Shown in pieces: positions 4,439 to 59,329 of a stretch of DNA of 64,000 nt. A model generated the notes under the pieces. It worked only from the letters and a program-made list of their open reading frames with translations, made no database searches and was not told the origin of the DNA. The stretch is taken from contig VJWM01000317.1 of the NCBI GenBank assembly GCA_010909165.1, positions 1-64,000 of the forward strand, given 5' to 3'. Position 1 is the first letter of the stretch, and every line of letters starts with the position of its first letter. Position numbers and translations under genes: made by a program. Source of the stretch: Anthoceros angustus. Taxonomy: Eukaryota; Plantae; Anthocerotophyta.

Positions 4439-5949
4439 GTGGTGATTGAAATTTTGAGATTTTCGTTGCTTGCAGATGAGAGAAGATCTTGTAAGGAGGT
4501 GGAGCGGGGTCTAGGAAGAGCCTACACGTCCTGGAACCTGTGTTGTGAAGGAGGAGCTCCACGCCTCCCGAATGGTGTGATTTTGTGTTCCCGCAAGAAT
4601 GGCGCATGGCGGTTGGCTGATTTTTCTTTAACAACCGTGTTTTGGAGGCTATGAGGATGCTTGCGATGTAGCAGAGGGAGGGAGAGGAGAAAACCATAGG
4701 AGGTCACCCCCACATCGCAAGAGATCTAAGAGTGCAAGAAGAAATCAATGGAGGGAGGAAAACGCGGTGGTTGCACGGCTCCAGGAGGAGGAAGAGCTAA
4801 GGGCGCTTGAGGAGGAGGCCGTTTTGCCCTTGCCTACAAGGGGAGCCAAGTGATCCAGCGACGCTCGAGAAGGGGACGCCGAAATCACCGACAAAAGTAA
4901 AGGAGGTGGTTGAAGAGAGTTGGTGTGTGAAGAGGAAAGCGGAGGAAGCACCATTTCGAGCACGATTCAAGTTCAGCTACCACCTGGGCCTCCTCGCTGG
5001 ACCTTCGGAGTGGTGGATCTAGCTCAACTCAGCAACAGAAGTGAAGAAGGAAGGGTGAGCGGTGGAGAATTTCAGTGGTCTCAAGATCTTGGAGCCTTGA
5101 TAGAATCACGCCAGCTCACCATCTTGGGACACCTAGGGAGACACCATCCCACAAGTCCCAATCTTTTGCAGACACCCTTCTGCAGAGAACTTTGGTTGGA
5201 GAATTTACTGCAGGAGAGGAAGGTGAGTTCGAGCTCATCCTGGACCAAGCAACATGAGTGGAGTAGGAGGGGAGGTTGATATGTGTTTGAGGGGAGGAGC
5301 GGAGTTGAGGCGGCGAGGAAGTTTCTAGTAATGGGGAGGAGGATCGTATCTTTAGGGTTGTGAGGGATAGAGGGTGAGATTAGCTGCGAGTGGAGGAGAA
5401 GGCTGAAGAGAGAGGTCTGAACAAGGCAAAAGAGTTCCGTGAGGAAGAAGAGAGTTGTTTGAGGGAGGTTGTCTGCTACGACAGCAAGGGGTGATGCTGA
5501 AATCCAAGGTACTAAGAGCAAGCGTTGAGGTTTGTGGTACATCTCAAGAGGAGGTTTTGCGTAGGACTAAGATTTGAGCTCCTTAGAGGGAGAGTGGCTA
5601 GGAAGAAGGAGGAAGGAGGAGTCATAAGAGAGGAAAGGTCCGAGGTCTGGCCTTCTTCTTCTTCTTCCTCTTCTGCCATCTTCTTGCAAGGAGGAGGTAC
5701 CAGGAGCTCACGTGTGTAGAAAGATCGACGATGAGGAAGGACTTGGAGAAGGTTGAAGAGGCGAGGAGTGCGTGGAGAAGGAGAGGAAAGGGAAGACGGT
5801 TCAGGATGGAGAAGGAGAGACGCCCACCGCAGGAGGAGGGATTGCAGGAAGGAGGCTTTGACAAAAAGAGTGATGGAGGTCAAGGCTGTGAAAATCAAGC
5901 ACGGAGGTCACCAGCAAGTCTTGGTATTGCTCAATTTGTCATCAAAAAA

Positions 5950-6440
5950 TAAGAATGTATCGCTGAGGAGGGAGGACCAGACAAGACTACGCTCACAACC
6001 GATTGCACTTACATTCCAAGCTACCTTCGCTTGTGCAACGCCCCGCCACTTGTGGTGAATGCTATCTTCCGAGATTTCTGGAAGTTCATGGAGGTATTTG
6101 GATGATTTTGGTTTAAGGGAGGAAGGTACCTAGGACACCTAAGACAATGTTTTCGAAGTGCAGGAGTCCAACATGAAGCTTCATCCAGAAGTGTTATTTT
6201 GGCATGACGAAGGTATTTTGTTGGCACATCGAGTTTGTGAAGAGGATTGCGTAGATAAGGAAGGTGGCGATAGATGGACGATCAAACGGTGAGGCAAAGG
6301 TGCTTTGTAGGAGTAGGATATTGGTGAGGTTCATCAAGGATTTTGCTAAGAAGGCAGCCTTGTGACCAATTGACCAAGAAGGATACACCTTTCGAATGGA
6401 GCGAAGATGGAGGCTTTTCAGAATTGAAGGACAGCTGGAG
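5950..6440 (+). pseudogene. pol: Gypsy reverse transcriptase, C-terminal half, frameshifted
   Basis: Strings across frames: IAEE.DQ.KTTLTTD, LCNAP, KFMEVF.DDF, NMKLHP, QLTKKDTPFEWSE. Confidence 0.85.
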
Positions 6441-6449
6441 CGCAATTAC

Positions 6450-6810
6450 AGCCGCCGCGATTGGGAGAAACCGTTTCATGTATACGGGATGTCCGCTATG
6501 CCATTGGGACCATCTTAAGCCGAAGGACGAAGAAACGGACCATCCGATTTTCTATGCTAGACACCACGGATGCGAGAAGAACTACTCAACCACGAGAGGG
6601 TCTTGGTATCATTTACTCGAAGTTTAGGCACTATCCGCTTGCTTGCAAAGTGACGCTTCATGTTGACCATTTTATGCTGAAGTACCTTGTGAACAAGCCG
6701 ATTTGTGAAGGATTGCCGTGGGTACTACTGCAAGAGTTTGATTATGACGAGAAACTAGGTTGAAGGTGAGAATGTGATTTCATTTCTCGCGAAACCGGAG
6801 AGCGACTCTG
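6450..6810 (+). pseudogene. pol: Gypsy RNase H, frameshifted
   Basis: YAIGTIL, HPIFYA, EKNYS, SKFRHY, HVDH..LKYLVNKP, VLLQEFDY. Confidence 0.88.
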
Positions 6811-38832: not shown

Positions 38833-39725
38833 GGAGTTGGAGGAAGAAATGGCAAAGGAGAAAGGCCATGAGGCGGTGGTGCATATGTTGGCGGAGGGGA
38901 GGGGAGATTTCGGCTGATTATGCCCTACAAGAGAGATTGATCCGCCAACCGCAATGAGAGGATGAGAATGTGGTTCTCCATGTCAAGACCGGTGAGCTGG
39001 CCTTGGAGCGAGATGCTTACAAAAGCAAGTGTGAGCATGGAGTATGGCTTGAGGATTATGAAGAATTGGAGATGGCACAACAACGATTTGCAGCCCATCT
39101 TCACAACAAAGTGCTCAAGGCCACTAACGAGTTGTTGCGACTTGCTGAAAGGAGAATGTTGGGACCTCATGACGATGATAGGGAGGCCCTCATGCAAGTC
39201 CAACCGGAAGCCTTAGACTTGGAGAGTGTCCCAAGCAGGTGGAGAAACTTCGCACTGGAGAAGCAAGAAGGGAGAAGCTGCATTGTGGAGAGAATCACCC
39301 TGTGAAGGGGTAAGGAAGAAGAAACGACTGGAGGAACTCCTACCGTGGTAGGAGGAGTTCCTACCGTGGTAGGAGGGACTCACCGTGGTAGGAGAAGGTC
39401 CCACCATGGTAGGAGGGCCGGAAGAAGCATGATTCAAAGGTCGCTAGCATGGATTTGACGGGGAGGCGAGTACCTTGGCCCTTGTGAAGAAGGAAGAGGG
39501 GTTGATCTTGCGTGAATGGAGCAAGAATCACAAGGAGAAGACCAACCTCCCAACATGGGTGCAGAGTAAGGAGCTCACTTGCTCCACAAGTGAGAGGAAG
39601 AGGAGAAGTCGAGGATGAGCCACACTAAGAGAGCCCGGCTATTTTATTGGAGGAAGGAACTCAAGATAGGCATCAAGATAAGGAAGGGGATTCATAAGAA
39701 GTCCTTAAATTAGCTTGAAGACATG
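38833..39725 (+). mobile_element. Family A/B ORF3 end and 3' UTR: left flank of the DNA transposon
   Basis: Same sequence as 2480-3355. Stops at GAAGACATG and continues as CATGGGGCAAGATGCC at 53534. Confidence 0.88.
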
Positions 39726-39744
39726 AACACGATAATATTCATAC
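39726..39744 (+). repeat. Left terminal inverted repeat AACACGATAATATTCATAC
   Basis: Exact reverse complement of 53515-53533. An imperfect GAATAA match extends a few bases further inward. Confidence 0.95.
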
Positions 39745-40274
39745 CGGCGGAATAAACAGGAAGCGGCTTTTGCAATGAATAAACTGGAAACCGGCGGGAA
39801 CATGGGAACGAAACGCCTGATCCTGCCATTTTCCAAAAAAAATGCTTCAAAATTACGGTTGCTTTGTGCGAAGCCGGATAATGTCATGACATAGGCTGGA
39901 AAGGGATATACAACCTCGATGGGCACACATTTGCCTTGAAATAATGCCCATACATGACTTTTACATTGGTGGCGTGAAGAGGGCACGAGAGGCCTCTTGC
40001 TATTCATTCAAGACGTAAAGGGTATATGATTTTGGAAAAACCGCTTTTAATGAGGGAGTAATAACTATTGGAGATGACAATGAAAATTCAACATGCGCAA
40101 GTCCTGTTTCCATCTTCCAGAATCAAGACATGCAATTGCTTTCCATGCCTTTGGTGTGTGTTTTGTACCGCCGAGTCTCACCGCTTCATGGATGGGTGCT
40201 ATCAAAGAAAAACAATCGCAAGGGGAACAAAAGTCTCCGAAGAGTGAGGAGATTGACTTACCTTAGAGAGAACT

Positions 40275-41025
40275 TTTGGACGCATGGACTCGAAATTCCG
40301 CCTTGACAAACATCGAAACATATGGATATTGAACTGCGGGGAGGTATTGTCAATGGGCGCCGGCATGCCGCGCCTCCACTATCTATATTTTCTACAAACG
40401 GTAGAAACAAGTGACTTACCTTGGAGAACTCGTGGGCGCATGGCCCCGAAATGCCGTCCCGCCGACAAAGCGTTGTAACATATGCGGAGTGGCTGTAGGC
40501 GGTGTAAGCAGAGGCCGGCATGCAGCGCCTCCACCTTATGACAGAAACAAGTGACTTACCTTGGAAAGAACTAGGGACACATGGACCCGAAATGCCGTCC
40601 CATCCGACAAACGTTGAAACATATGAGGAGCGAATGCGGGCTAGGGTATTGTCGGAGGCGCATGCTGCCTCCACTATCTATATTTTCTACAAGCGAGAAA
40701 CAAGTGACTTACCTTGCAGAACTCGTGGACGCATGGCCCCGCCAAATGCCATCCCTTCAAAACGTTTAAACACATGAGGAGTGAATCAAGGGAGGCGGTG
40801 CATGCCGGCGCCCACCGCTTATACCGCTAAACGGTAGAAACAAGTGACTAACCTTGATGAACTAGGGAACACATGGACCATGAAATGCCATCCCATGTGA
40901 CAAATGTTCAAACATATTAGGAGTGAACTGCAAGCTAGGGTATTGTCAATGATGGCGCCATGCGGCGCCCACGGAATTTTGGAAGACAAGCGGTAGACCA
41001 CGTAAAAGCATGGACCCGAACGCCT
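40275..41025. repeat. Subterminal tandem array, ~140-150-bp unit, about 5-6 diverged copies
   Basis: AGAAACAAGTGACT recurs at ~40403, 40543, 40696, 40836. CATGG(A/C)CC.GAAATGCC recurs at ~40285, 40440, 40581, 40732, 40872. Confidence 0.85.
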
Positions 41026-41249
41026 TCATTACATAGCGACGTAAAAGCGTGCGACCGGTGTTCAGCCAACCTATCTAGTAATCGCCTCCGAGTATGAAAC
41101 TGGAAGCCAACATACGCTAACTCTATCGTGAAAACAAAACCCTAAAATCTCTAGTCTTGGGACATCGAATTCCTTCGTCAACCAAAGGACATCCATCATC
41201 CACTTCATGGTCATCCTCCTCTCCAGCGCAGATAAGGTCGCTTTGATTC

Positions 41250-44200
41250 ATTCTATCTCGAATAGCCTTCTTGTCGGAGCGTAAAGGTGCTTTCTTGCAT
41301 TGAGGTTGAACCCATAATAGAGAATAATAGTCTTATTCACAAATAGTTTCGAATGTTTTGGGTAAATTTCTCTTTCCCACTCTCTTCCCATTTCGCGATT
41401 GTCGATTGTCTGGTCCTCTAACAAAGAACTCCTCAACATATTTCCCTTCAAAAGCATCACTGTGCTCAGTCCTGTACCAGTGGACCATAAGAAATGGGTT
41501 CGCACAATCGAAGTCTACGCTTTCCACCTTCCCAATCCAGAAAGCCCTGTTATGTGTATCTCCTGAGCATGGAGTTGCAATGAACATGCCCTTCCTTATC
41601 TCTTTGACATCTCCATTCATCCTTTCTATTTCTTGATGTTGTCGACTTGCATTCTGGTGAGCTCCCAAATACATATCCCGTTGAGGAACTTCTCTTAGTA
41701 ATGCTTCATCAAGCACAACCTCCTCCGGCACTTGAAGTGGCGGCATGTGCCTCCACCTCTTCTCTGTACCACCTCCACGGTTGTTTAAGCACTAGAGCAA
41801 TATTGTTCTCCACAATAGTGGCAATTCCTTCCTGGTCGACCCAAAACAACCTCCACCACACCCTCTCCGATGGCGTGATATACGTCGCCAAGTTCAGTAA
41901 GCCATGCTTCAAGTGCGCCACACCTGCCGTTGGTGAAAGACCTCCATCTTGACCCTTTTTGTCTCTCGCCTTCAGCGGCATGAGGGGAGTGGGGCGTACG
42001 GTGGTTGATGGAACAAATTTCAAAAATTCCAAACCATCTTCTGATTCCCATTGAGGGGATGTTGAGTACTGCTTACTTCGAATGACCGTAACTTGACCTC
42101 GGTCCTGTCGTTCCTCTCTCGTGATTTTAAATTGATGTTGGAAGGAAAGATTATTCAAGCGTTCAGCCGCCTTGTATGCATATCCTCTCGTCCCTTCTTA
42201 ATGGGCCATACATAAGACCAATCACCACCTCTGTTATTACTTTAACTTCCGTTGGGGTGAAAGCCTGTCAAAATCTCCGAAAGTGTATCAATAGTAAACG
42301 CTTCTTTGTGCCTAAGAAGCTTGAGAAACAAGAAAACATTTGATCAACGATCATGGGTATGACCAACCAATAGGAACCCAACCTTTATTTTAACACACGA
42401 AGGTCGATGAGCATATTTAGATGCGAATAGTAGCTGGTTCTTGTTCTCGCAAGTATTATCAAGTGAGGTAAAGAACTTTAGGAAGCACCCTTCGTAAGAA
42501 AATATGACATCCTGAATTATATGGATAGTGAGATTGGCGTCGTTGTGCAGATTAGCGTAGTGTAAATATGCCCTGGCCTTGAAAGTGTAATTATGTATCA
42601 TACATCCCACCACATGAACATTAATAAGTGATGCCTCTGCCAACTCTTTGGGATAACGGAGGAAATGAGGGAGCTCTGTCTTCTTCTGGTCCATGCCATC
42701 GATAGCAAGCTGCATATACTTGTGGGGCTGACTATAACTTTTGGACCGATGTTTTGCTGCTTTGTCTCTCTCATTGCTTAGTCGCACCCTGTGTGATGCC
42801 AAAGCTCCTTCGTAAACCTCTGCAAAAATGGAGCGACAGTATTATATCAGACAGTATTGTTGCACAACGTCTACACTAACATGAACATGGGTGCGTTAAT
42901 CTCTCGGGGCGGCATGCACCCCCCGGACCGACATGCGGAAAAGCTTTGGGGGCACACCGCCTCGGCGCCCAGGCGCAGGCCGGCGGCCGCCCTGCATGTC
43001 TTGAAGGGTCTGGGCCCCGGTACAATGGAAGCACTCTTCCGCCTACAGCAACCTATGTGAGTCTTGCACATTGGTATCTACATTGCCACACCTCTGCGAC
43101 AAGCGAGGCGCAAGCCAGGTGGCCCACCTTTTAAGAAGCCACATATGCATATACACTACAGGACATGTAAGCAGGCGTCATGCATCCTTCCAAAATGGTT
43201 CTTAGAAACTATGCACATCCCGGCAGGATATGAAGAACAAACCTTGGTACGCTTTCTGGAAGTGTTCCGGATGGTGCGCTTGATCCTTCACATAAAGAGC
43301 AAGTGGAAAACCTATTAGACTTTGGAATCCTAACCTTGGGAAGTTGGTCCTCCAGGGTCGGAAAATAGGGATAGACACGAGCGCATACTAGACCGTGTCA
43401 TATCCGGCGATCTGGCCCGGATCTCCAACTTTGAGAGGTGGAACACATCAACGTTTGGCAGCCTTTCCGCCTTGAAAGTGTAATTATGTATCATACATCC
43501 CACCACATGAACATTAATAAGTGATGCCTCCCAACTCTTTGGGATAACGGAGGAAATGAGGGAGCTCTGTCTTCTTGGTCCATGCCATCGATAGCAAGTC
43601 GCATATACTTGTGGGGCTGACTATAACTTTTGGACCGATGTTTTGCTTTGTCTCTCATTGCTTAGTCGCACTGTGATGCCAAAGCTCCTTCGTAAACCTC
43701 TGCAAAAATGGAGACGACACAGTATTATATCGAGACAGTATTGTTGCACAACGTCTACACTAACATGAACATGGGTGCGTTAATCTCGGGGGGCGCGGCA
43801 TGCGGCCTCCCGGACCGACATGCGGAAAAGCTTTGGGGGCACGGCCTCCGCCCGAGGCGCTTTGAGGGGGTCGCGGCTGCCGTGGCCGTGCATGTCTTGA
43901 AGGGTCTGGGACAATGGAAGCACTCTTCCGCCTACACCAACCTATGTGAGTCTTGCACATTGGTATCTACACACCTCTGCGACAAGCGGGGCGCAGCCGG
44001 TGGCCCACCTTTTTGAAGCCACATATGCATATACACTCACTTGCAGACATGTAAGCAGGCGATCATGCATCCTTCCATAAAATGGTTCTTAGAAACTATG
44101 CACATCCCAGCGGATATGAAGAACAAACCTTGGTGCCTGCGGAAGTGTTCGGATGGTGCGCTTGATCCTTCACATAAAGAGCAAGTGGAAAACCTATTAG

Positions 44201-47200
44201 ACTTTGGAATCCTAACCTTGAAGTTGGTCCTCCGAGGGTCGAAAGGATAGGGACAGGCGCATACTAGACCGTGTCATATCCGGATCTGGAGATCTCCAAC
44301 TTTGAGAACGTGTCCGGTGGAACACTGGAACACATCAACGTTTGGCAGCCTTTCCGCCATCTTGGCGTATCCATCCGCAGCGGCTCCCGGTGTGTAGATG
44401 GTTGTCGCGGATTCACTCTTGACCCATCCACGGTGCATTGCATAACACCACCTCTTCAACTCCTCGTACCTCTCGAGCCGATGCGGTATACTCTTGAAAA
44501 GCTTGCAAACAACACCGAATCGCGTCGCCCCATTATATGCGTGATGACCTTGTCCTTTTACGGTGGCACTAAGTCCACGACCGGAGGGATCAAGAAATGT
44601 CTCTCTCGCCCTCCCCATTCGCGATAACGTTGCTCATGGAAATTGGCCTTAGACATTGGTGGGCGCATTGCTTGTTGCGGCATGGCTTCGGAAGTCCGGT
44701 GACAACGTCGGAGTCGCTCTTGACAAAGGAACTCCACTTGCCCGCCTTCTACGAACCACGGATTGCATGTCCGTGGCGCCACAAATGTTTCGCTCGGTGG
44801 TTTGGGGTGGAATGACCGTGCGTCGGGGCGGTCGCCTTCCTCTCTCACTAAAGGTGCATCGGCGAGGGTTTCGAGAACACCCTCCTTTCCTCAATTGGAA
44901 ACAAACCCCGGCCTTGGCAGTGCGTGGGAACTATTCGGTTCTTCATGGCGGCCGTACTAGGACTCCGCTCCACGGTGAATACAAATTGATGTTCCTTGGT
45001 GTTGAGGAACACCGAGAATCCTTGGTGAGGTCTGGACCCGCTTCCTCCAACCTTCATGCAAGCGCGGCATTTGGTGACGATCGGGGGGAACTGGCCTCTT
45101 ACAGTGTTGTTGGCATGCGTGAGGGAGAACTACCGCGAAATTAACATGACCATCTACTACCCACAAGCCATTTGGAGGCTGCGGTGTGTTGTGCGGCATC
45201 ATCGGACAGGAGGATCGGACGCATTCAATCTTGCATTGCGTTTCCTTTTTCTTGCGGCGTCCGACTCTCGGTTGAAGCTGCGATGACAAGTCCTCCCTTC
45301 ACCGCAACATGAAAGCGAAGTTTAGGCGGGAAGAACATCAAGGAACATTATTGCATGGAGTGCATTGGATACAACAAATATCGCTCACTTCACCGTCCAT
45401 GCGGTGAGTCTCTGTAACATTCGCAGGCGATGCCACTTCACCCACGACACAAAGCAAGTGTGTTCTCCTGCAGAAAAGGGAAATATAACGTCAAGCCACC
45501 AACTTCAACGTCACCGCACGAGAAAGGCTGCGCTCAATGCACAAGTTCTAGACCTATAACGGCAAACAATCGGTGCCATCGTAATGGCGCCGCCTCCGCC
45601 AAAGCGACACCACCATTAAGAGGTGTAGTTAGGACATTGTCCTAAAATGGAATTTATGCATTATATGCGTTCGCGAATCCATGGAGGTTACGGTGAGAAG
45701 CAAATGAAGGGAACCCTAACTTCTTGTCGCGTATAAGGTCTTTAAAACCATTTCCCCACACTTGTCCACACGAAGCGGGCTTTCGTCCCCTTCAACTTTG
45801 TGGCTGCAGCGGACTCCTGCGGCGGGCGAGAGGGAGTGATTCAACGCTTGCGGTGGCATGCGTGAGGACGAACTACACGAAATTAACACGCGACCATCTA
45901 CTACCCACAAGCCATTTGGAGGCTGCGGTGTGTTGTGCGGCATCATCGGGGCGGAGGATCGGACGCATTCAATCTTGCATTGCGTTTCCTTTTTCTTGCG
46001 TCCTCTCGGTTGAAGCTGCGATGACAAGTCCTCCCTTCGCAACATGAAAGCGAAGTTTAGGGAGAAGAACATCAAGGAACATTATTGCATGGAGTGCATT
46101 GGATACAACAAATATCGCTCACTTCATCCATGTGAGTCTCTGTAACATTCCGCGGCGATGCCACTTCACCCGACACAAGCGAAAGTGTGTTCTCCTGCGG
46201 AAAAGGGAAATATAACGTCAAGCCACCAACTTCAACGTCACCCGCGCACACGAGAAAGTGGCGCTCAATGCACAAGTTCTAGACCTATAACGGCAAACAA
46301 TCGGTGCGCCATCGTAATGGCGCCGCCTCCGCCAAAGCGACACCACCATTAAGAGGTGTAGTTAGGACATTGTCCTAAAATGGAATTTATGCATTATATG
46401 CGTTCGCGAATCCATGGAGGTTACGGTGAGAAGCGGGCAAATGAAGGGGAACCCTAACTTCTTGTCGGGCGTATAAGGTCTTTTAAAACCATTTCCCCAC
46501 ACTTGTCCACACGAAGCGGGCTTTCGTCCCCTTCAACTTTGTGGCTGCAGCGGACTCCTGCGGCGGGCGAGAGGGAGTGATTCAACGCTTGCGGTGGCAT
46601 GCGTGAGGGCGAACTACACGCATGCTGCGACCATCTACTACAAGCCATTTGGAGGCTGCGGTGTGTTGTGCGGCATCATCGGACAGGAGGATCGGACGCA
46701 TTCAATCTTGCAGCGTTCCTTTTTCTTGCAGCGTCCGACTCTCGGTTGAAGCTGCGATGACAAGTCCTCCCTTCACCGCAACATGAAAGCGAAGTTTAGT
46801 GGGAGAAGAACATCAAGGAACATTATTGCATGGGTGCATTGGATACAACAAAGATCGCTCACTTCAGCATCCATGCGGTGAGTCTCTGTAACATTCGCGG
46901 ACGATGCCACTTCACCCGACACAAGCGAAAGTGTGTTCTCCTGCGAAAAGGGAAATATAACGTCCAAGCCACCAACTTCAACGCCACCCAACGCAGAAAA
47001 GGCGCCGCCGCTCAATGCACAAGTTCTAGACCTATAACGGCAAACAATCGATTGCACGCCATCGTAATGGCGCCGCCTCCAAAGCGACACCACCATTAAG
47101 AGGTGTAGTTAGGACATTGTCCTAAAATGGAATTTATGCATTATGTACGTTCGCGAATCCATGGAGGTTACGGCTGAGAAGCAAATGAAGGGGAACCCTA

Positions 47201-47385
47201 ACTTCTTGTCCGGGCGTATAAGGTCTTTTAAAACCATTTCCCCACACTGTCCACAGGCACGAAACGGGCTTTACGTCCCCTTCAACTTTGTGACTGCAGC
47301 TGCGGACTCCTGCGAGCGGGCGAGAAGAGGGAGTGATTCAACGCTTGCCAGTGGATGCGCGTAGGGCCTTTGAGGATCATCCCCA
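41250..47385 (-). CDS. Sola-superfamily-like DDE transposase, multi-exon, frameshifted and partly duplicated as assembled
   Basis: LAIDGMDQKKTELPHF (42686-42703), LDNTCENKN (~42437-42460), FLLVGHTH.DVDQMFSCFS (~42320-42380, one frameshift), YAKMAERLPN upstream. C-terminal SFQHQFKI and FWIGKV..VHWY segments. Intron acceptor TTTTGCAG near 42820. The start position and Sola subgroup are uncertain. Confidence 0.78.
42576..44358. repeat. Tandem duplication (~0.89 kb x2) inside the transposase gene
   Basis: 42579-43471 is repeated at 43472-44358. Junction microhomology GCC. Confidence 0.88.
45112..47353. repeat. Tandem triplication (~0.74 kb x3) in the transposase 5' region
   Basis: Units start at GGCATGCGTGAG at 45112, 45855 and 46596. 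Confidence 0.9.
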
Positions 47386-47504
47386 CGCAAGGAAGGAGGT
47401 GTTCTTCTCCCCAATTCGTTGCTTTCCACCTCGCAAAGTGAGAACTCTAATACGTATGCTTTCAGTTGGTTGATGCGCGTCCGCGTTCCTTGTGGCAGGA
47501 AATC

Positions 47505-50500
47505 ATGGCATCGGGGAGGGCTCTCCGGAGCAAGAAGGACCTAGCGGCGCCTACGCTTGAACCACCTTCCGAGATTGCGGCGGAAGAAACCAAGAAGAAG
47601 GCGACTCGGAGGCGGGCGGAGGAAGTCGCGGATATGGCGGCGGCCGACAAGGGTGGTGGCGGCCAGGCGCCGCGGCAACAGCATCGCTGAGGCGGTAAGG
47701 ATGTGGGTGGGCGGCGAAATCGAGCTCGGGAATTCAGCAAAAGCCAGCAACACAGGAGGCGAGGCGGGCCACGAAAGACAAGGAGGCTTGAAGGGGAAGA
47801 AAGCAACCCGATCCTGTGCCTTCGCCATACAACTTGGAAGAAACTATGCTCATCGGGCGCGACTAACTCAATCGATGCGATAATTGTCTAGGGAAGGAGT
47901 GGTTTTTTACCAGGCGGGCGGATGATCTTGACCATATGGACACATACAGTGGTTCTGAGGTTTGGACCAGCTAAGCCAAATCGGTGAGCAAGAGTTGGCT
48001 GGGTTGTATGGGCAAGCTGGATTGTCGCAGGGCGAATTCGAGGTCCTCCTTACAACAAAGCCACACCAAGCTGGATGAAATTCGCCCGTGCGGAGGAGTT
48101 CAAGGTTATCACCGTGGGCCTTGGGATGTTCAAGCTTAAGAAGTGTTCCCGGATGTCGACAAGCGCCTTAGAGGCTAAGCAGAATCAACACGTATGGACG
48201 GTTGGCTAACATTGTTTTGTGCTTGAGCTGTGCTTTTCATTTCGCTTGTTGCTGCATGTAGCTGTGGGTTGGCTTATGAGTTTTGTGTGTCAACAGGCTG
48301 GGAGGGCTTTCTATAAGCAACTGTTTGCTTTTCTCACACAGTCTATCGTGGACCACCGGAGAGAAATGAGCATCGGCGAACCAGGCAGCCCTCCCAAAAT
48401 CACGACGAGGACCTCTCGGGCTCGGAGGAAGAGGCTGGGCCCGAAGATGAGCATGATGGACCATTGCCCGACATCCTTGGACAATCCGGCGAAGATGATG
48501 GAAGAAGCGGGGATGACTTGGAAACCGAGGTTAGAGATGCGATTAATAATGGATTATGACATGCCTCGACTCTATGCTTGTGCCCCAGTCCCTTATAACC
48601 CGCCACAGTGAGCGCGGCATCTTGCGCCCGACTCCATTCAGGTGTGGGTCCGCCAACCCCTCGGCCGGGCATGGGTATGGATGTGGCGGGGAGCAAGGAA
48701 GAGGAGGGCGGCATGCGGCGCCTACGTGCGGTGTGGAGTCCTCCCAACCCCCATGCAGGCATGTTTATGGATGTGGCAGGAGCAAGGGAAGGGGTGGGCG
48801 CCGGCATGCCGGCGGCCCGACTCCTCATCCCACAGCAGGCGCCACCCTTCTACTATACCAGGTGCTATGAGAGCTATCGACCCAGCCGTTGGATTGTCGG
48901 GAGGGGCTGGAGGAAAGGCAAACGAAAGCGCACCAGGAACAGCAACCCGAACACGACACCCAAGTCCAGATGCAGCTGGTAATTTGTTGGCAGGCAACGA
49001 GCTAGTCATTTCCGATACAAGGCCGGGATCTGGAAAGAGGAAACAGAGTGCTGATGCAAGAGGATCTGAGCGCGAACGAGAGAGTTTGGAGCCCGAACAT
49101 GGTAAAATACGGAAGAAAGCAAAGACTACGAACTATGTCACCAGAGAGACATTCCCAGTGCACCTTTCAGATGAAGAGAGGTTGGAATCTTCCTTCCACG
49201 AGGAGGACTACCTCACCCGAATTCGAGATCAGCTATGTCACGAAGAAGGTGGTCCGGAGGCTGTCTGGTGAAGCTGGAGAATCTGCGGCTGCCTCTTATC
49301 TAACCCGGATCATGATTCGGCGTGTGGATGAAGCGTGGACTAATTATCCGCTCGCGTGATTGGAAAGGGCCGAGTTGAGGAGGGCGTATTGCCTTTGTGC
49401 ATGATTGATCCCAAGGAGTGTGATGATCTAGAGGACTGGTGGAAAAATTCGGGCAAAGAAATACATCATGGGTGTGTTAGGCGGGAACCACACATTTGCG
49501 GCAATGCAACATTTGGCGGACATATCACCGATGAAAGAGCGTTTCAAATGGATAGAGGCACATGTGTATTGTGGGCGACCCACCAGAAATGAGGGTTTTG
49601 GCGGTGATCACAATACAATGTCGACAAGCGGAAGATGTCGTTCATAGAGCAAGTAAGATATCTCGAGATGAGCGCTTATAGCCAAGCGGGATGGCGTGCA
49701 TATGTCCATGAATTGGAAGTTCAACTGTATAAGGTATTGGGTCTTATCGAAGATGATGAAGGACGGAAGATGATGCCTACAAAGCAGAACAAGGTTGACA
49801 ACGGGGCGCACATCTTGTGCATAGCGAAGTTGGAAGGAAGGGTATGGGAGAATGTGGACAAAATTTTTGCAAAGTGGGAGGCTTGTGACTTGCGGACGGA
49901 AGAAACATGTGGCGGATTGAGCAAAAGAGCAAAGGCAAGCGGAAGCGTGAAGAAAGCGAAACAAGTTGAGGGTATATTGGTGAAGCCCAAGGAGATGCAG
50001 ACAAAGCCATGGCGTTGCTTTCAAGGTATTCTGCGGGGAGGCGGGCAGCAAATGCTTATTAGTGCCAGAAAGTTCTCACGGCCTTATGGATTTGAAGGAA
50101 TGTCGGATGAAATTATATTGCGAAATTGCATATCATCCAAGTGGCCATGGCGAAGCACTTAGGATGTTCATCTTTTGAGATGGTGAGGCAAGAGTACCCA
50201 CAACATTCCACGAAGTAGTCGCGGGTTCAGGCTTTCGAGGGAAAGGTATGTTATCATACTCTCTTGTTTCTTAGAATCTTTATATGGTATGGGAGGAGGA
50301 GGAGGAGGGAGGCGCGGCATGCCGCCTCATGGGATGGCGCCGGCCTCGCCCGTCGAGGTTGGGTGGGGCGGCATGCCGCTCCTTCATCCCACAGCGCCAC
50401 CCTTCTACTATACCGGTGCTATGAGCTATCGGCCGTTGGATTGTCGGGAGGGCTGGAGGAAAGGCAAGCAGCGCACCGAGGCAGCACCCGAACACGACAC

Positions 50501-52830
50501 CCAAGTCCGGATCATTTGGTAATTTGTTGGCAGCAGCTAGTCATTTTTACAAGGCCGGGATGCGGAAAGAGGAAGCAGTCTGATGCAAGAGGATCGGCGA
50601 GAGAGTTTGGAGCCGAACATGGTAAAATACGGAAGAAAGCAAAAGACTACGGGAACTATGTCACCGTAGAGACATTCCCAGTGCACCTTTCAGCGGATGA
50701 AGAGAGGTTGGAATCTTCCTTCCACGAGGAGGACTACCTCACCCGAATTCGAGAGCGACATATGCGAAGAAGGTGGTCCGGAGGCTGTGGTGAAATGGAG
50801 AATCTGGCCCTCTTATCTAACCGGATGCGCGATTCGCGTGTGGATGAAGCGTGGACTAATTATCGGCTCGCGTGATTGGAAAGGGCCGAGTTGAGGAGGG
50901 CGTATTGCCCCTTTGTGCATGATTGATCCCAAGGTGTGATGATCTAGAGGACTGGTGGAAAAATTCGAGCAAAAGAAATACATCATGGGTGTGTTAGGCG
51001 GGAACCACACATTTGCGGCAATGCAACATTTGGCGGACATATCACCGATGAAAGAGCGTTTCAAATGGATAGAGGCACATGTATTGTGGGCGACCACACG
51101 AAATGAGGGTTTTGGCGGATCACAATACAATGTCGACAAGCGGCGGAAGATGTCGTTCATAGAGCAAGTAAGATATCTCGAGATGAGCTTATAGCCAAGC
51201 GGGATGGCGTGCATATGTCCATGAATTGGAAGTTCAACTGTATAAGGTATTGGGTCTTATCGAAGATGATGAAGGACGGAAGATGATGCCTACAAAGCAG
51301 AACAAGGTTGACAACGGGCTCTTGTGCATAGCGAAGTTGGAAGGAAGGGTATGGGAGAATGTGGACAAAATTTTTGCAAAGTGGGAGGCTTGTGACTTGC
51401 AGAGAAGAAACATGTGGCGGATTGAGCAAAAGAGCAAAGGCAAGCGGAAGCGGAAGAAAGCGAAACAAGTTGAGGGTATATTGGTGAAGCCCAAGGAGAT
51501 GCGAGACAAAGCCATGGCGTTGCTTTCAAGGTATTCTGCGGGGAGGCGGGCAGCAAATGCTTATTAGTGCCACCGAGAAAGTTCTCCGGCCTTATGGATT
51601 TGAAGGAATGTCGGATGAAATTATATTGCGAAATTGCATATCATCCAAGTGGCCATGGCGAAGCACTTAGGATGTTCATCTTTTGAGATGGTGAGGCAAG
51701 AGTACCCACAACATTCCACCAGTAGTCGCGGGTTCAGGCTTTCGAGGGAAAGGTATGTTATCATACTCTCTTGTTTCTTAGAATCTTTATATGGTATGGG
51801 AGGAGGAGGAGGAGGGAGGCGCGGCATGCCGCCTCATGGGATGGCGCCGGCCTCGCCCGTCGAGGTTGGGTGGGGGCGGCATCGCCCCTCATATAGTAGG
51901 GGTTGCCACGGGGAGGACGGCGCATGCGCGCCCACCGGTCTAGATGCTCGGGCCCTAAGTGCGGGGAGGCGCCCGCATCTCGCCTCCGCTAATATTGAGC
52001 ATCCTTTTTTGTGCAGCAACAAAAGACATTGAAGTCCTTACCAAGTGCCGAAAACTTTCAGCAGTTCATTTATGAGGTCAACACTTGGAAGGGCTTGGAG
52101 GATGAGCAGAGCTCGCATGAGATAGAGACATAGAAGAGGATTGTTGCAATTCACATCCGATCGGAGAAAAAATCGATGTCAGTTCATGCTCGAGATGTGC
52201 GGGATATGCGAGGTTTTGTGAGGAAGAGGAGTTACTCTTTGCTTGTGATGGATGTCCCACGTGGATTCGAGAAGGGCCCAAAGGATGGAAGGTTTGATAT
52301 TTGGCAAGTTGGTAATGTTTTGCATTCCTTCCATGACTTGTTGAATCTGGCGATTCGGGATGATCATAATGCATGGTGTGGAAGATTCACATATTGTGCG
52401 GGGAGCCTATCACGGAAGTGGTGCGGAGGGTGGTCTTGTTTCATTTGTGTGGACAAGACAAATGTCAACAACGACAAGGGTGGGTTTGATACGGTGGAGT
52501 ATGTCAGCGGGTGAAATGAAGAAAAGCTCGAGTTGCGGTCATCATGTTACCTAATGTTTTGCGGGCACTTTCAATAATGGTCGGTCGGTGATTGCCCACC
52601 ATACGATTGTGAAAAATGGTTTATCATTCACTTGACAAACTTGTTATCTGTCCCTACCAGTGACCTTTAGGTTTGATGATGAAGCTTATCAAGACATTCT
52701 CAAGGAAGGGTGGATATTGGATGCATGTGCGGTAGTGGGTCATCTTTAATGGCTGCCTTGTTGTCGGCGAAATTGTATTTCTATCGAGGACAAGAGGTGT
52801 GCATTCATTCCAGCGTGTACATGGATATGA
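47505..52830 (+). CDS. ParB/Srx-like domain plus beta-class N4C/N6A DNA methyltransferase, multi-exon fusion gene (frameshifted; 1.56-kb segment duplicated)
   Basis: Putative exon 1 MASGRALRSKK (47505) with donor GTAAGG at ~47695. YIMGVLGGNHTFAA at 49474 and 50991. Intron 51753-52016. LLVMDVPRGF at 52242-52268. VICPYQ*PLGLMMKLIKTFS at ~52643-52702. WILDACAGSGSSLMAALL.GRNCISIE at ~52711-52790 with two 1-nt frameshifts. Motif IV precedes motif I, the beta-class order. Confidence 0.72.
48803..51880. repeat. Tandem duplication (~1.56 kb x2) of the ParB-like exon block
   Basis: Units start at GGCATGCCG at 48803 and 50370. Both contain VLGGNHTFAA and MSFIEQVRYLEMS. Confidence 0.9.
51753..52016 (+). 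other. Spliceosomal intron linking the ParB-side exon to the methyltransferase exon
   Basis: AAG|GTATGT donor and TTTTTTGTGCAG| acceptor. The downstream exon is in frame with MSVHARDVRDM at 52176 (53 codons, one TAG). Confidence 0.65.
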
Positions 52831-53514
52831 AATCTTAGGATGCGGAGGAGGCGACACATGAGCCGCATCGTCGTGGTCCATCTCAATTACAGGCCAAGGA
52901 GGTTTGCGTCGTGAGAAGGATATTGGGAAGGCTCAAATTGTGCCTCTAGGGTCGGCGAATGAAAGAAAGGACTGGAGACCACAGCCGATGAGGGCAACAG
53001 ACACTAGAGGTGTATGGCACACTGACCTCGAAGTTGACGGAAGGAAGGCAGCGCCCGGCGATGATGGTCATGGACTCTTTCGGAGAGCGGATGAAGCCGA
53101 AGCGTCACCGTAGTTCACGATAGTGAAGCCGGTTTGTGTGCGGTTGAATCTTGAGACCGTGAACTTCCTTAGGTGGCTAGAACGTTTTCTGTTTCGTGCT
53201 GTATGTCGTATGGGCCGTTGTCTTTGGAGTGGATGACACGCGGATCTTCTAGTAGCAAGTTGTTACGTATAAGCCATGAGGCCATTTTGAATACATCGGC
53301 GGGCACTCTACTTATAAGCGAGCATTGCCGCTTGTCCGCAAGCATCCACACGCACCTAGCACCTTCATTGCGGACCCCTTTGAACCGAAATTGAATGTCT
53401 CAATCACAATGATTGCTTGTGCGCGTGTGCTTTCGAGGCGTGTTTGGAGCGAATTAATGGCCTATGAAAAGTACCAATGACAATTTTTCCATAACCGCGT
53501 ACATTATTCATGGT

Positions 53515-53533
53515 GTATGAATATTATCGTGTT
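53515..53533 (-). repeat. Right terminal inverted repeat GTATGAATATTATCGTGTT
   Basis: Exact reverse complement of 39726-39744. Followed by CATG at 53534-53537. Confidence 0.95.
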
Positions 53534-53578
53534 CATGGGGCAAGATGCCACTTGGGAAGACTTTTCTTTAGAGGAGGA

Positions 53579-54657
53579 CAGGCATTAAAACTTGTCGGCC
53601 CGATGAAGTGTGTTGACTAGCTAGATAGGAATGTTGGCGAGAGCCATTAAGGCTCACATAGGTGAATTTTGCTAGAATAGAATTTTACCCAAGATGCTTG
53701 GATGTCGAACTTAAATTCGACAATAGGATACACTAAAATAAGGAGTAAAGGTGCGAGGCGCGCCGAGGCTGTATGTGAGGACCTCCCTATAAAAGGAGGA
53801 GCTTGTGAAGTAAAATTATCGTGTCTTGCGCTCCCATCCTCCGAGTCCTTCACTTTGTGTGCGGGAATTTCGTCTTGCATACCAAGCCAAGTCTGGTAGA
53901 GAGGAGCAGTCGGTCTTTGGGCGGAGGGCTTGCTCTTCTGAGCGCCCACTAGCTGCTCCCCTTGTGAATGGTTCTTTGTGTGAATTGTTTTGCTTTGAGT
54001 GTGTGGCGATGCTCAAGGAACTCTCGGCTTGAGGGTAGGCTGGAAAGACTCCTGGAGGTTCTCATTTATGGTACAAACCACATAGCCGGAAGAACTCGTT
54101 AATTTCGAGACGGACCCAGGCGGTTGTGCCGTAAGGCGAGTTGGAATTAATGAGCCGACAATTAGTGTTAGAGTAGGAGATTGTGGAGGAAGGAAGGGTA
54201 GATGAGTAGAGAAGAAGAGGCGTTGTTGATTGAGAGAGTTGTGAGGAGGATTAGAGTGTAGGAAAAGCGGAGGCCACAGGCGAGCCTAAGGGACGATCCC
54301 AAATCTGCAAGTAAGAGGGCTCCACATGTGGAGAAGAGTGTCTTAGGAGTAGGGACGAAGTTGCGGTGTGGGTCGGGGGTCACAGGCGCCGTGATGACAC
54401 CTTCTTTGTTAAGGCGTACACTGGTGTGTGGTGTCGTTGTAGGTTGAGGTTTGGTGAGTTCTGACGGCTGGTGCGTGGCTGCTGTAGAGGCGTGAGGCGC
54501 CTTGCTTGTTTAGAAGGCTGAGGTAGTGTGGAGCTGCGGTGGTGATTTCTCAAGATCGGATTTTGTCTCATGGGGCGAAACCCAGCGTCTGAAGCAGCGG
54601 TGGGATAAGTGTGGCGCTAGAGGGTGCATCTCGGGAGCCAGGATCACGCCTCCCACC
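53579..54657 (+). repeat. Gypsy 3' LTR (variant B end), preceded by PPT
   Basis: PPT at ~53562-53578. Similar to the family A LTRs. Ends ...GGATCACGCCTCCCAC(C)A with no PBS after it. Confidence 0.85.
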
Positions 54658-57600
54658 AGGGAGGTGCAAAGGGTGATCTTCCAAGAAGATGGACATGATC
54701 ATCATGGGCGGGTTGATAGCCGTGGTAATGTGGAGAGGCACATTCCTCCACGGTGATGATGAACGAGGTCGAACAAGCTCCTATAGAGGTGCACATGCTC
54801 GTGGGTCGAGGCGGATTACACGACCTCGGCGGTGTAATCCATCTCCTGGATTATGTCGTCTTTGACAGTTACAGGAACCCTCTTCTTACAAAAGAGCCAT
54901 GTCAATGAATAACAAGCGAGTGGGAGAAGGCCATGCGATTGATGAATTATTGCATAAAACCAAACTTGGGAGTTGGTTCGTTGCCTAGGGATAAGAAGGC
55001 ACTCACGTGCAAATGGGTGTACAAGATGAAGGTCATACCCTTGATGGCAAACCAAAGTACAAGGCACGATTGGTTGCTAAGGGTTTCAAGCAACAACCGA
55101 GCATTGACTTTGATGAGATTTTCTCACGGTAGCCAAAATGACAACTTTGCGATGTGTTCTTGCTTTGGTTGCGAGAATGATATGGAACTTATGCGGATGG
55201 ATGTCAACACGACATTCTTGCATGGTGACCTTCAAGAGGACGTCTAGCAATATGTGATAGCCAGAATGGGTTTCTTGCATCCAAGAAGATGGACATGATC
55301 ATCATGGGCGGGTTGATAGCAATGTGGTAGTAGAGCACATTCCTCCACCGATAGATGAACGAGGTCGACAAGCTCCTATAGAGGTGCACGTAGCCGTGGG
55401 TCGAGCGAGGATTACACGACCTCGGCGGTATATAATCCATCTCCTGGATTATGTCGTCTTTGACAGTTGTGGGGAACCCTCTTCTTACAAAAGAGCCATG
55501 TCAATGAATAACAAGCGAGTGGGAGAAGGCCATGCGATCGGAAATGAATTGACATAAAACCAAACTTGGGAGTTGGTTGGTTGCCTAGGATAAGAAGGCA
55601 CTCACAGTGCAAATGGGTGTACAAGATGAAGGTCATACCCTTGATGGCAAACCAGCACGATTGGTTGCTAAGGGTTTCAAGCAACAACCGAGCATTGACT
55701 TTGATGAGATTTTCTCACCAGTAGCCAAAATGACAACTTTGCGATGTGTTCTTGCTTTGGTTGCCAGGAATGATATGGAACTTGTACAGATGGATGTCAA
55801 CACGACATTCTTGCATGGTGACCTTCAAGAGGACGTCTACATGTAGCAATGTGGAATGGGTTTCTTGCATCCGAAGACGCAAAGAGGCCACATTTACCCT
55901 CTATGTCGTTATAGTCTTAGGATTCGATCCCAAGGGAATGGTTTTGTGTCAAGGTGTTCTGAATCTATGGATTCTAGACCTACCCCGCCGCTCACTACCC
56001 ACCTTATCCAGCTACCCTACCCAAACCCACCACGTGGTAGACTGCCACCGCAGCGGTTCACCACCGTGGCGGGTCCCACCACGCTGCACCGCGGGGTCTA
56101 TTTGTCACCGCTCCTCGCAGACCTTGGGGCTATGGACATACAAACACCTATATACACCTCACTTACCTCTAGGAATTTCTGCGATTCCACCGCACTTCCA
56201 CTCCCCCACGCATTTCGATTTTCCCCACACGCACTCACAATCCCTCACAGTAGCACTCATCTACCCTTTGAGGACCTTTCCCTTCCTAATGAACTCTCCC
56301 TCGCCTCCCACCAGGGAGGTGCAAGGGTGATCTTCCAAGAAGATGGACATGATCATCATGGGGGCGAGTGGTAATGTGTGGTGGAGCACATTCCTCCACC
56401 GATAGATGAACGAAGAGTCGAACAAGCTCCTATAGAGGAGTGCCGTGGGTCAGAGGCAGATTACACGACCTCGGCGGTGTATAATCCATCTACGGATTAT
56501 GTCGACAGGTGACAGTTGGGGAACCCTCTTCTTACAAAGAGGCCATGTCAATGAATAACAAATGAGGGAGAAGGCCATGCGGTCAAAATGAATTTGCATA
56601 AAACCAAACTTGGGAGTTGGTTGGTTGCCTAGGGATAAGAAGGCACTCACAGGTAAAATGGGTGTACAAGATGAAGGTCATACCCTACGATGGCAAACCA
56701 AGTACAAGGCACGATTGGTTGCTAAGGGTTTCAAGCAACAACCGAGCATTGACTTTGATGAGATTTTCTCACGGTAGCAAAATGACAACTTTGCGATGTG
56801 TTCTTGCTTTGGTTGCGAGAATGATATGGAACTTATGCAGGATGGATGTCAACACGACATTCTTGCATGGTGACCTTCAAGAGGCGTCTACATGTAGCAA
56901 TGTGGAATGGGTTTTGCATCCGAAGACGCAAAGAGGCCACATTTACCCTCTATGTCGTTATAGTCCTAGGATTCGATCCCAAGGGAATGGTTTTGTGTCA
57001 AGGTGTTCTGAATCTATGGATTCTAGACCTACCCCGCCGCTCACTACCCCACCTTATCCAGCTACCCTACCCCAAACCCACCACCGTAGATCGCCACCGC
57101 AGTTGGTGTTCACCATCGTGGCGGGTCCCACCACAGCGCGCCGCCTGTCGCGGGGGTCTATTTGTCACCGGCTTCCCTGGCGCAGACCTTGGGGCTACAT
57201 ACAAACACCTATATACACCTCACTACTAGGAATTTCTGCGATTCCACCGCACACCCCCACGCATTTCGATTTTCCCTCACACACTCTCACAATCCCTCAC
57301 AGTAGCACTCATCTACCCTTTGAGGACCTTTCCCTTCCTAATGAACTCTCCCTCGCCTCACGGGCCACACAGACCCCTCCTTGGGCCGCACAGACCCCTC
57401 CTTGGGCCACACACAGACCCCTCCTTGGGCCACAGACCTCCTTGGGCCACCACAGACCCCTCTCATGGAATAAAACACGCCTGGTGTGGGGAACCCTCTT
57501 CTTACAAAAGAGCCATGTCAATGAATAACAAGCGAGTGGGAGAAGGCCATGCGATCGGAAATGAATTGACATAAAACCAAACTTGGGAGTTGGTTGGTTG

Positions 57601-58299
57601 CCTAGGATAAGAAGGCACTCACAGTGCAAATGGGTGTACAAGATGAAGGTCATACCCTTGATGGCAAACCAGCACGATTGGTTGCTAAGGGTTTCAAGCA
57701 ACAACCGAGCATTGACTTTGATGAGATTTTCTCACGGTAGCCAAAATGACAACTTTGCGATGTGTTCTTGCTTTGGTTGCAGAATGATATGGAACTTGCG
57801 GATGGATGTCAACACGACATTCTTGCATGGTGACCTTCAAGAGGACGTCTACATGTAGCAATGTGGAATGGGTTTTGCATCCGAAGAAGCGCAAAGAGGC
57901 CACATTTACCCTCTATGTCGTTATAGTCCTAGGATTCGATCCCAAGGGAATGGTTTTGTGTCAGGTGTTACGAATCTATGGATTCTAGACCTACCCGTCG
58001 CTCACTACCCACCTTCTCCGGCTACCCTACCCAAACCCACCGTGGTAGACTCGGCCACCGATGGTGGTTCAACCAGTGGTCCCACGTGCGCATCGCGAGT
58101 CTATTGTCACCGGCTTCTCGCGCGACCTTGGGGCTATGGGCACAAACACCTATATACACCTCACTTACTTAGGAATTTCTGCGATTCCACCACTTCCACT
58201 CCCCCTCGCATTTCGATTTTCCCTCACGCACTCACAATCCCTCACGGTAGCACTCATCTACCCTTTGAGGACCTTTCCCTTCTAATGAACTCTCCCTCG

Positions 58300-58402
58300 C
58301 CTCACGGGCCACAGACCCCTCCTTGGGCCACACAGACCCCTCCTTGGGCCACCACGGACCCCTCCTTGGGCCCAGACCCCTCCTTGGGCCACAGACCCCT
58401 CT
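58300..58402. repeat. Short tandem repeat, ~20-bp unit CACAGACCCCTCCTTGGGC x~5 (second array at 57360-57462)
   Basis: Read directly from the sequence. Followed by AATAAAACACGC in both arrays. Confidence 0.9.
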
Positions 58403-59329
58403 CCTTGGAATAAAACACGCTGGTGGCGGTTGGGAAGAGGATCGAAAGAAACCCCGCTGCTTGGGCGATTCGCCTTCCCGGCAGCTCCGCCTCGGCCTTC
58501 GCGGCAATTCCTACCTCTTTTTCCAAGGCCACCCTCCTCACACCCCGTGGAGCTTGGCCACCCGCCTCGACCATCCAGGATCTTCCGGCCTTCTTGTGAC
58601 GAGAAGGCGGTGCATCGAACGAGTTTGATGCTGATCAGACGTCTCCAACCAACCTCGCGCATAGCTTCAACACACGGAAGTTCACACCTAAAATTGTCTG
58701 TTAAGAGAGACTCTCAAGGGTCTCTTATACATTCAGCTGTGGATTTCCACAGCTCACTCCTACCAGTGTCTAGAAAATATGGCCCACTACCACGAGCGCT
58801 CCTACCAATTCAGGTAACTACAGCTCCACGGGTCCTCAAAACATCCTATCCCCTACCCCAAAAAGAAGCCTCTGGCCTATGATGTCGCGCTCCCCTAAAA
58901 TCAGTAGCGTGATTCTTTGCCTAGCCTACGGTAGGTGGGGTTCCGTCGCTCTCGCTCTCTGCCGCCTCATCCGGCGATTCTCCCCAAAACCTCCACCTCG
59001 GCATCGCACTGCGGTTTCTTGGCGTCTTCCATGGGCGTCGTCGTCTATAGGCCCTATGCATTATTCCGCTCCTCATCGTTTGGACGCCACAGTGTGCTCC
59101 TCCCTCACGCCACAGCCTCCGCTCATTTCCTCGATCACCACTTGGGGGTAGGCCCCGCTCCGTTCGGAAGAACCAGTGGCGTGGCGGTCAAGATGTCGAC
59201 CAATAGTTTACGCCCCTCTGTCCCAACAACCACATACACATTTAGAGTGAGCACCGCTCACCATGCGGCGAAGCAGGACATGAGCATCCTCATCCAGGGC
59301 CGTAACTGTCGCTCTTGACTACGAGGTTC

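Follow-up and report, generated by a model that had tools for sequence, protein, structure and literature searches.

We analysed a 64,000-nucleotide stretch of the Anthoceros angustus genome (positions 1 to 64,000 of contig VJWM01000317.1, assembly GCA_010909165.1; hereafter the window) and found that positions 39726-53533 are a damaged copy of a large Sola1-like cut-and-paste DNA transposon, 13.8 kb in length. In the reading that we consider likely, the transposon inserted into a CATG of an older repeat, its second gene is an accessory gene of the transposon lineage that joins a ParB-like domain to a methyltransferase (MTase)-like domain, and the copy in the window is a pseudogene. The pairing of ParB and N4C/N6A MTase domains in Sola1 has already been published for the brown alga Ectocarpus, in a 2025 transposon survey describing the giant family Sola1-1_Ec32 (Genome Biol 2025, PMC12477816), and the basic discovery is not new. 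A preliminary description of the window had recognised such a gene within a DNA transposon: its anatomy is largely right, but its functional and evolutionary claims exceed the evidence.

Transposon ends and insertion site

The element is bounded by a perfect pair of 19-bp terminal inverted repeats (TIRs), AACACGATAATATTCATAC at 39726-39744 on the plus strand and its complement at 53515-53533 on the minus strand, and each TIR is bordered externally by CATG (39722-39725 and 53534-53537). Five other copies of the host repeat in the window read ..GCTTGAAGACATGGGGCAAGATG.. unbroken, and because these are paralogous empty sites in the same window, both the insertion and its 4-bp CATG target-site duplication (TSD) are shown directly. 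The transposon splits one copy of an older repeat that occupies most of the window. The preliminary description had set a multi-exon plus-strand gene inside TIRs, and this was borne out, but the TIRs lie at the positions given here and do not delimit the interval 47505-52830, to which that description had assigned the transposon. Window positions 1-39700 and 53538-58400 consist mostly of a single ~9-10 kb repeat, present in direct and inverted copies that are 83-93% alike, with a copia-like reverse transcriptase motif near 55.2 kb and a strong GC skew (+/-0.3) that flips with orientation.

Two divergently oriented genes occupy the element, a DUF7869-type transposase on the minus strand and the intron-containing accessory gene on the plus strand, with a central tandem array of three ~740-bp units (45111-47367) between them. 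The transposase is a broken remnant (41513-43655, minus strand) in which an open reading frame (ORF) at 42344-42802 carries Pfam DUF7869 (E 1.2e-14), and an internal duplication of ~0.9 kb in this region spans 42576-44358. We found 29 homologues of the transposase ORF at ~50% identity, together with tblastx matches to metagenome contigs L014-L016. Sola elements reportedly generate a 4-bp TSD (Bao et al. are said to have described this in 2009), and the Sola1 label proposed here for the window element draws on TSD length and on a gene pairing like that of Sola1-1_Ec32.

An accessory gene shared with related elements

Relatives of the accessory gene were found in two metagenome assemblies of an AT-rich eukaryote (33-38% GC over L014-L016). 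Contigs L015 and L016 were found via transposase homologues and L017 was reached through a homologue of the ParB exon (P0032); a multi-exon accessory gene is present in 3/3 of these contigs. It adjoins a DUF7869 transposase on the opposite strand in L015 and L016, and the L017 contig starts within the accessory gene. L017, a Joint Genome Institute (JGI) metagenome contig (sample 3300072920), holds an apparently intact five-exon ParB-like/MTase-like gene (L017:147-3158). The relatives' proteins follow the order ..YYVIGGNHSAEA.., helical linker, ..ILGDCEKIANLVPKKEYSLVIADIPHGYN.., ..IYQKPQ..WVLDLFSGSG.. and ..KNCIAIE.., and the MTase exon of L016 passes the PF01555 cutoff (E 5e-8, 33.6 bits vs 26.7).

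Family profiles built from the relatives only, and aligned frameshift-tolerantly to the window DNA, scored 63.4 and 57.0 bits over two copies of the ParB region and 47.3 bits over 52042-52809, against values of no more than ~25 bits in the rest of the window and no more than 22.5 bits in shuffles. The same pair of genes occurs in this distant AT-rich eukaryote and, as published, in an Ectocarpus Sola1 element; we read the accessory gene as native to the transposon lineage rather than captured from a host. The window TIR was also sought in the relatives' contigs, with no convincing match.

All parts of the accessory gene lie on the plus strand. Its presumed 5' part (47508-48700) comprises an ATG followed by charged low-complexity stretches and is delineated by ORFs; no homology test was passed over this interval. 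Next come two tandem copies of the ParB-like domain, with its GGNHTFAA box, and the helical region that follows it (49395-50114, the 63.4-bit match with 7 frame changes; 50964-51622, the 57.0-bit match with 8). The counterpart of the end of exon 2 in the relatives (IQVAMAKHLG..EYPQHST, 51643-51752, 27.9 bits, no frame change) stops at the splice donor of a GT-AG intron (51753-52016), beyond which lies the broken beta-class amino-MTase-like domain (52042-52809). The intron has canonical ends (donor GGGAAAG/GTATGT and acceptor TTTTTTGTGCAG/, the slash marking the boundary) and a pyrimidine tract, contains one copy of a GC-rich palindrome treated below, and falls at the same protein position as in L017, after the ..AFKK / ..AFEGK exon end. 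The intron had been proposed in the preliminary description, and its ends and position agree with that proposal, but no RNA run is listed as containing the stretch.

The 1.5-kb tandem duplication behind the two ParB-like copies is real in the assembly, with copy 1 at ~48.8-50.2 kb, copy 2 at 50.2-51.7 kb, and a third copy, represented by its start only, overlapping the proposed intron (tandem region 48817-51890). Aligned over 1120 columns, the copies agree at 1045 and differ by 29 substitutions and 21 indel events; the duplication may have been produced by the assembly. Local tandem duplications of 0.6-1.5 kb, ~88-93% alike, were observed across 40-58 kb of the window (42576-44358, 45111-47367, 48817-51890 and 54647-58425). 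Their copies differ largely by 1-4 nt indels, and these duplications are either very young or artefacts of noisy long-read assembly.

The methyltransferase-like domain

The C-terminal MTase part (PxQKP, then FxGSG) is, at the level of sequence comparison, statistically solid. The beta-class motif order that had been reported after the ParB-like region was found in the window as DVPRGF .. FVW.DK .. CPYQ*P .. ILDACAGSG .. RNCISIE (asterisk, in-frame stop), with motif I and the strand after it (WILDACA / GSGSSLMAALL / RNCISIE) at 52711-52790 across three frames. The peptides quoted in the preliminary description are accordingly all on the plus strand, though in three reading frames rather than one.

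The C-terminal 68 residues were read through the breaks with X for profile searches. This peptide matched PF01555 as its sole Pfam family, below the cutoff (15.7 bits, E 0.015), and five DNA-methyltransferase families in PHROG (E 8.8e-7 to 6e-2). The earlier assignment to PF01555 is therefore upheld by the L016 exon and by the best PHROG match, while the window peptide itself stays under the Pfam threshold. We also constructed an MTase profile from YhdJ of Escherichia coli and 11 phage N6_N4 MTases and aligned it to the DNA by a frameshift-tolerant dynamic programme, which removes the choice of frame; piecewise hmmsearch of six-frame ORFs with this profile was too insensitive and was replaced by this alignment. 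Across the whole window on both strands, the best score was 34.6 bits at 52664-52900, compared with 22.3 for the next best elsewhere in the window and 15.3 +/- 1.9 (maximum 22.8) for 200 shuffles. That alignment spans only P..L..I .. LD..GSG .. R..I.IE. Appending the N-terminal pieces from the preliminary description to the C-terminal peptide gave no gain in score against the phage/E. coli profile, and homology of the N-terminal half was revealed only by the relatives' profile. No match was obtained with ten unjoined ORF pieces against Pfam or with tblastn of the C-terminal peptide against phages, and PDB sequence and profile searches returned no relevant match.

The relatives also allowed catalytic motif IV to be located. 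At 52251-52268 (plus strand) the window encodes DVPRGF in place of DPPY, aligned to DIPHGY in L017, DIPPGY in L015 and NIPHDF in L016. Alignment of the relatives to the MTase set with hhalign gave a probability of 97.9% and E 5e-13, with 241 columns in register with greedy extension; the GDC box and the strand leading into motif IV fall on ..DLIFADPPY.. of YhdJ with top posterior confidence. The family's DIPH segment is placed on DPPY and the window's DVPRGF aligns to the same segment, in agreement with the earlier assignment of LLVMDVPRGF to the motif-IV position. At the DVPR bases (52251-52262), no difference from the assembly is listed in an Illumina contig of word depth 60.

Two other readings of this region were discarded. 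A PHD-finger-like pattern in another frame of 52190-52290 (C..C ... CDGC) was dropped, as the family alignment fixes the frame of DVPRGF, and a second candidate for motif IV, 'DCPPY' at ~52596, was rejected, as it lies only ~18 codons before PxQKP and the family alignment runs through another frame at the DCPPY site.

The ParB-like domain

The window and 13 relatives share a conserved GGNH(T/S/F)xxA box and the sequence around it, although the arginine of the ParB_N box is not kept. In language-model features (Atlas), the window piece and a relative fall near DUF3723 (0.96), ParB_N and DUF6551 clusters, and tandem copy 2 has an Atlas recognition score of 3084. A DUF3723-like model resembles ParB_N + HTH_ParB proteins (TM 0.45-0.5), and a cluster with ParB_N + N6_N4_Mtase architecture is among the structural neighbours of the DUF3723-like match; these likenesses serve as leads. 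A phmmer search of 1.84 billion representatives with an 83-aa ParB piece, itself short and broken, returned 0 matches, and a homologue search with a 126-aa piece found no protein. Based on the motif, the language-model features and the published description from Ectocarpus, the label 'ParB-like' is probable.

The closest clusters to the ParB-like region in language-model features were fungal DUF3723 proteins and unnamed Porifera and Cnidaria clusters. These similarities give hints that ParB-like modules may be widespread in eukaryotic mobile elements.

Evidence against the assignment and the question of activity

Several results weigh against describing the gene as a ParB-like/MTase-like accessory gene of a Sola1-like transposon. 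The placement of the transposase in Sola1 is by TSD length and gene pairing, not by reference transposases. For the ParB region, there was no match in Pfam or NCBIfam and none in PDB by profile search; ParB-like families were the top or sole informative matches in PHROG, at E 0.1-0.3; and an hhalign comparison with eight phage ParB-like proteins reached E 0.09 across 101 columns, with the register as expected (YYViGGNH on vvdGhHR). An AlphaFold2 (AF2) model of the ParB-like exon had a pLDDT of 44.3, and its Foldseek matches in PDB were meaningless. The ParB core motif named in the preliminary description falls on a conserved box that has not kept the arginine, and the profile and fold comparisons are all below significance. 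For the MTase-like part, the profile of YhdJ and phage enzymes misses the catalytic N-terminal half in the window, Pfam and PHROG do not recognise that half even in the clean relatives, and motif IV is without the second proline pattern and without an aromatic residue at the canonical place.

It is conceivable, though we think it rather doubtful, that in this lineage the MTase-like domain has become a pseudo-enzyme or changed its chemistry, having kept the S-adenosylmethionine (SAM)-binding half (PxQKP, FxGSG) and lost the DPPY loop, and that it serves as a DNA- or SAM-binding module producing neither N4-methylcytosine (4mC) nor N6-methyladenine (6mA). DVPR, DIPH, DIPP and NIPH all depart from (D/N/S)PP(Y/F/W/H), which was found in 0/4 sequences (the window and three relatives), and this, like the silence of Pfam and PHROG on the N-terminal half, would be expected of such a domain; the active eukaryotic enzyme DN4MT1, by comparison, retains TSPPY. 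However, a [D/N]-x-P core with an aromatic residue two positions on ([G/D]-[Y/F]) is kept in the four sequences, and because these are divergent, its conservation suggests constraint on the motif-IV loop. The GDC box and preceding strand, moreover, align with high posterior confidence to active MTases, and the authors of the Ectocarpus study predict an active N4C/N6A enzyme (PMC12477816). Given the four aberrant motifs, the unrecognised N-terminal half and the TSPPY of DN4MT1, we regard the methyltransferase-like identity, as read from sequence, as secure, but not its identity as an active N4C/N6A methyltransferase.

State of the window copy

The window copy is a pseudogene from which the protein cannot be made. 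Family alignment of the MTase-like part needs 14 frame changes and crosses two in-frame TGA codons, one at 52342-52344 (plus strand; C*IWRF here vs SPLWRF in the family) and the other at 52661-52663 (plus strand), at the K of PxQKP (CPYQ*PLGL). Each tandem copy of the ParB-like part requires 7-8 frame changes, of which five coincide in position between the copies, and the accessory gene as a whole has two in-frame stops and >20 frame breaks. Illumina contigs of the same sample cover one of the two stops and one frame break. The TGA at 52342 and the DHNTMS/KMSFIEQ frame break are both present in these contigs (word depth 47-60), and they are therefore real and common to the copies behind the Illumina contigs.

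We assessed whether the gene could instead be intact and active, with all stops and breaks due to errors of long-read assembly. The assembly is rich in errors, as 21 indel events separate the tandem copies over 1.1 kb and the Illumina-derived contigs differ from it by small indels; because of this noise, a frame break alone is not proof of a dead gene. Nevertheless, the stop and break seen in the Illumina contigs, the five breaks matched between tandem copies and the lack of a listed RNA run make an intact gene very improbable. The preliminary description had held the element to be still mobile and its enzyme able to put a mark on DNA. Neither claim is supported: two in-frame stops and many frame breaks interrupt the gene, one of each being seen in Illumina contigs as well, no RNA run is listed as containing it, and motif IV is non-canonical in the window and in 3/3 relatives.

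Comparison with known systems

That the gene is a one-off Pack-type capture of a host or bacterial gene, or contamination, is close to refuted. In its favour, prokaryotes and phages are the typical setting of both domains, and the window pieces are without a direct homologue in large protein libraries. Against it, the same divergent pair recurs in a distant AT-rich eukaryote, where the transposase cores are ~50% identical and the intron position is conserved; the pairing is also present in Ectocarpus Sola1 (PMC12477816); and the gene, which contains introns of spliceosomal type, is enclosed by TIRs whose empty site is proven.

The accessory gene thus appears to be part of the transposon lineage, and its nearest described counterpart is that of Sola1-1_Ec32. 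There, a 1104-aa protein combining ParB-like and N4C/N6A methyltransferase domains is encoded on the strand opposite the transposase, and a role in binding and modifying the element's own DNA was proposed for it (PMC12477816). The two systems share a large TIR element and an accessory gene opposite the transposase with ParB-like and MTase domains, a likeness from which homology is inferred by architecture only; the Ectocarpus family is 21.5 kb long and resides in a brown alga, whereas the window element is 13.8 kb and a broken copy. The same domain and beta-class motif order is found in prokaryotic, phage and plasmid fusions of ParB_N and N6_N4_Mtase (PF02195 + PF01555), and the C-terminal MTase motifs of the window match families of phage MTases at E 1e-6 to 1e-4. 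These fusions keep DPPY, whereas the gene of the window lineage has introns, a long helical linker and a ParB-like part too divergent for Pfam.

In the red alga Bostrychia, accessory genes of Plavaka elements include PAG2 (N6A MTase + SET) and PAG3 (ParB + 2-oxoglutarate (2OG) oxygenase), and arrays of inverted repeats adjoin the ParB-domain accessory genes (bioRxiv 10.1101/2025.02.11.637652). The likeness consists in a transposon-borne ParB-like domain, a DNA-modifying domain and inverted repeats, represented here by element-confined palindromes and by a repeat-dense island in L016. Bostrychia differs in superfamily (Plavaka/KDZ) and in carrying ParB and MTase in separate proteins with other partner domains. 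Comparison was also made with domesticated enzymes. The bdelloid N4CMT is a domesticated eukaryotic N4C methyltransferase of prokaryotic beta-class type, and Marchantia MpDN4MT1a/b likewise has a prokaryotic-type beta-class amino-MTase fold in a eukaryote. DN4MT1, however, has the canonical TSPPY and belongs to the host genes, with expression in sperm, and no ParB domain has been reported for it, whereas the window lineage has DVPR/DIPH and lies between TIRs. The window gene has neither the TSPPY-type motif nor the location outside transposons that mark the domesticated N4C MTases, and a line of descent between the two would be conjectural.

Element-confined palindromes and a possible role

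A GC-rich palindrome of 18-24 nt, with a full form of about GGAGGCGCGGCATGCCGCGCCTCC, is repeated within the transposon. Two copies with the core CGGCATGCCG lie at 50311-50382 (starts 50311 and 50365), and further copies start at 40357, 40516, 43792, 48705, 48802 and 51818. All matches to a 10-mer (8/8, with 1.35 expected) and to an 18-mer (6/6, with 0 expected) fall inside the element, and the centre of the palindrome, CATG, is the sequence of the TSD. These palindromes might be candidate binding sites of the ParB-like domain or targets of methylation. In L016, an otherwise AT-rich contig, the interval that separates transposase and ParB/MTase-like gene contains a GC-rich island (positions 5500-6450) dense in short-spaced inverted repeats.

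In intact copies, the ParB-like domain would recognise the element's repeated palindromes, and the MTase-like domain would bind SAM and modify, or merely bind, the element's DNA, such that the transposon could be marked or regulated. A more far-reaching version of this scheme, which we consider unlikely, is a self-marking module in which an intact ParB-like domain docks on the CATG-core palindromes and the divergent MTase writes 6mA or 4mC there, with the mark controlling transposition or shielding the element from host silencing. Under that version, such elements would form a reservoir, extending from brown algae to a land plant, for the repeated domestication of amino-methyltransferases by eukaryotes.

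Implications

The window copy and the copies represented by Illumina contigs are dead, and the lineage-wide non-canonical catalytic loop casts doubt on activity. To the published Ectocarpus pairing, the window adds a proven insertion with TSD and empty sites, a transposase/accessory-gene pairing conserved in a second, distant eukaryote, and palindromes restricted to the element as candidate binding sites. Should intact copies be active, they would constitute a eukaryotic counterpart of phage and plasmid self-modification and a plausible source of non-canonical 6mA or 4mC.

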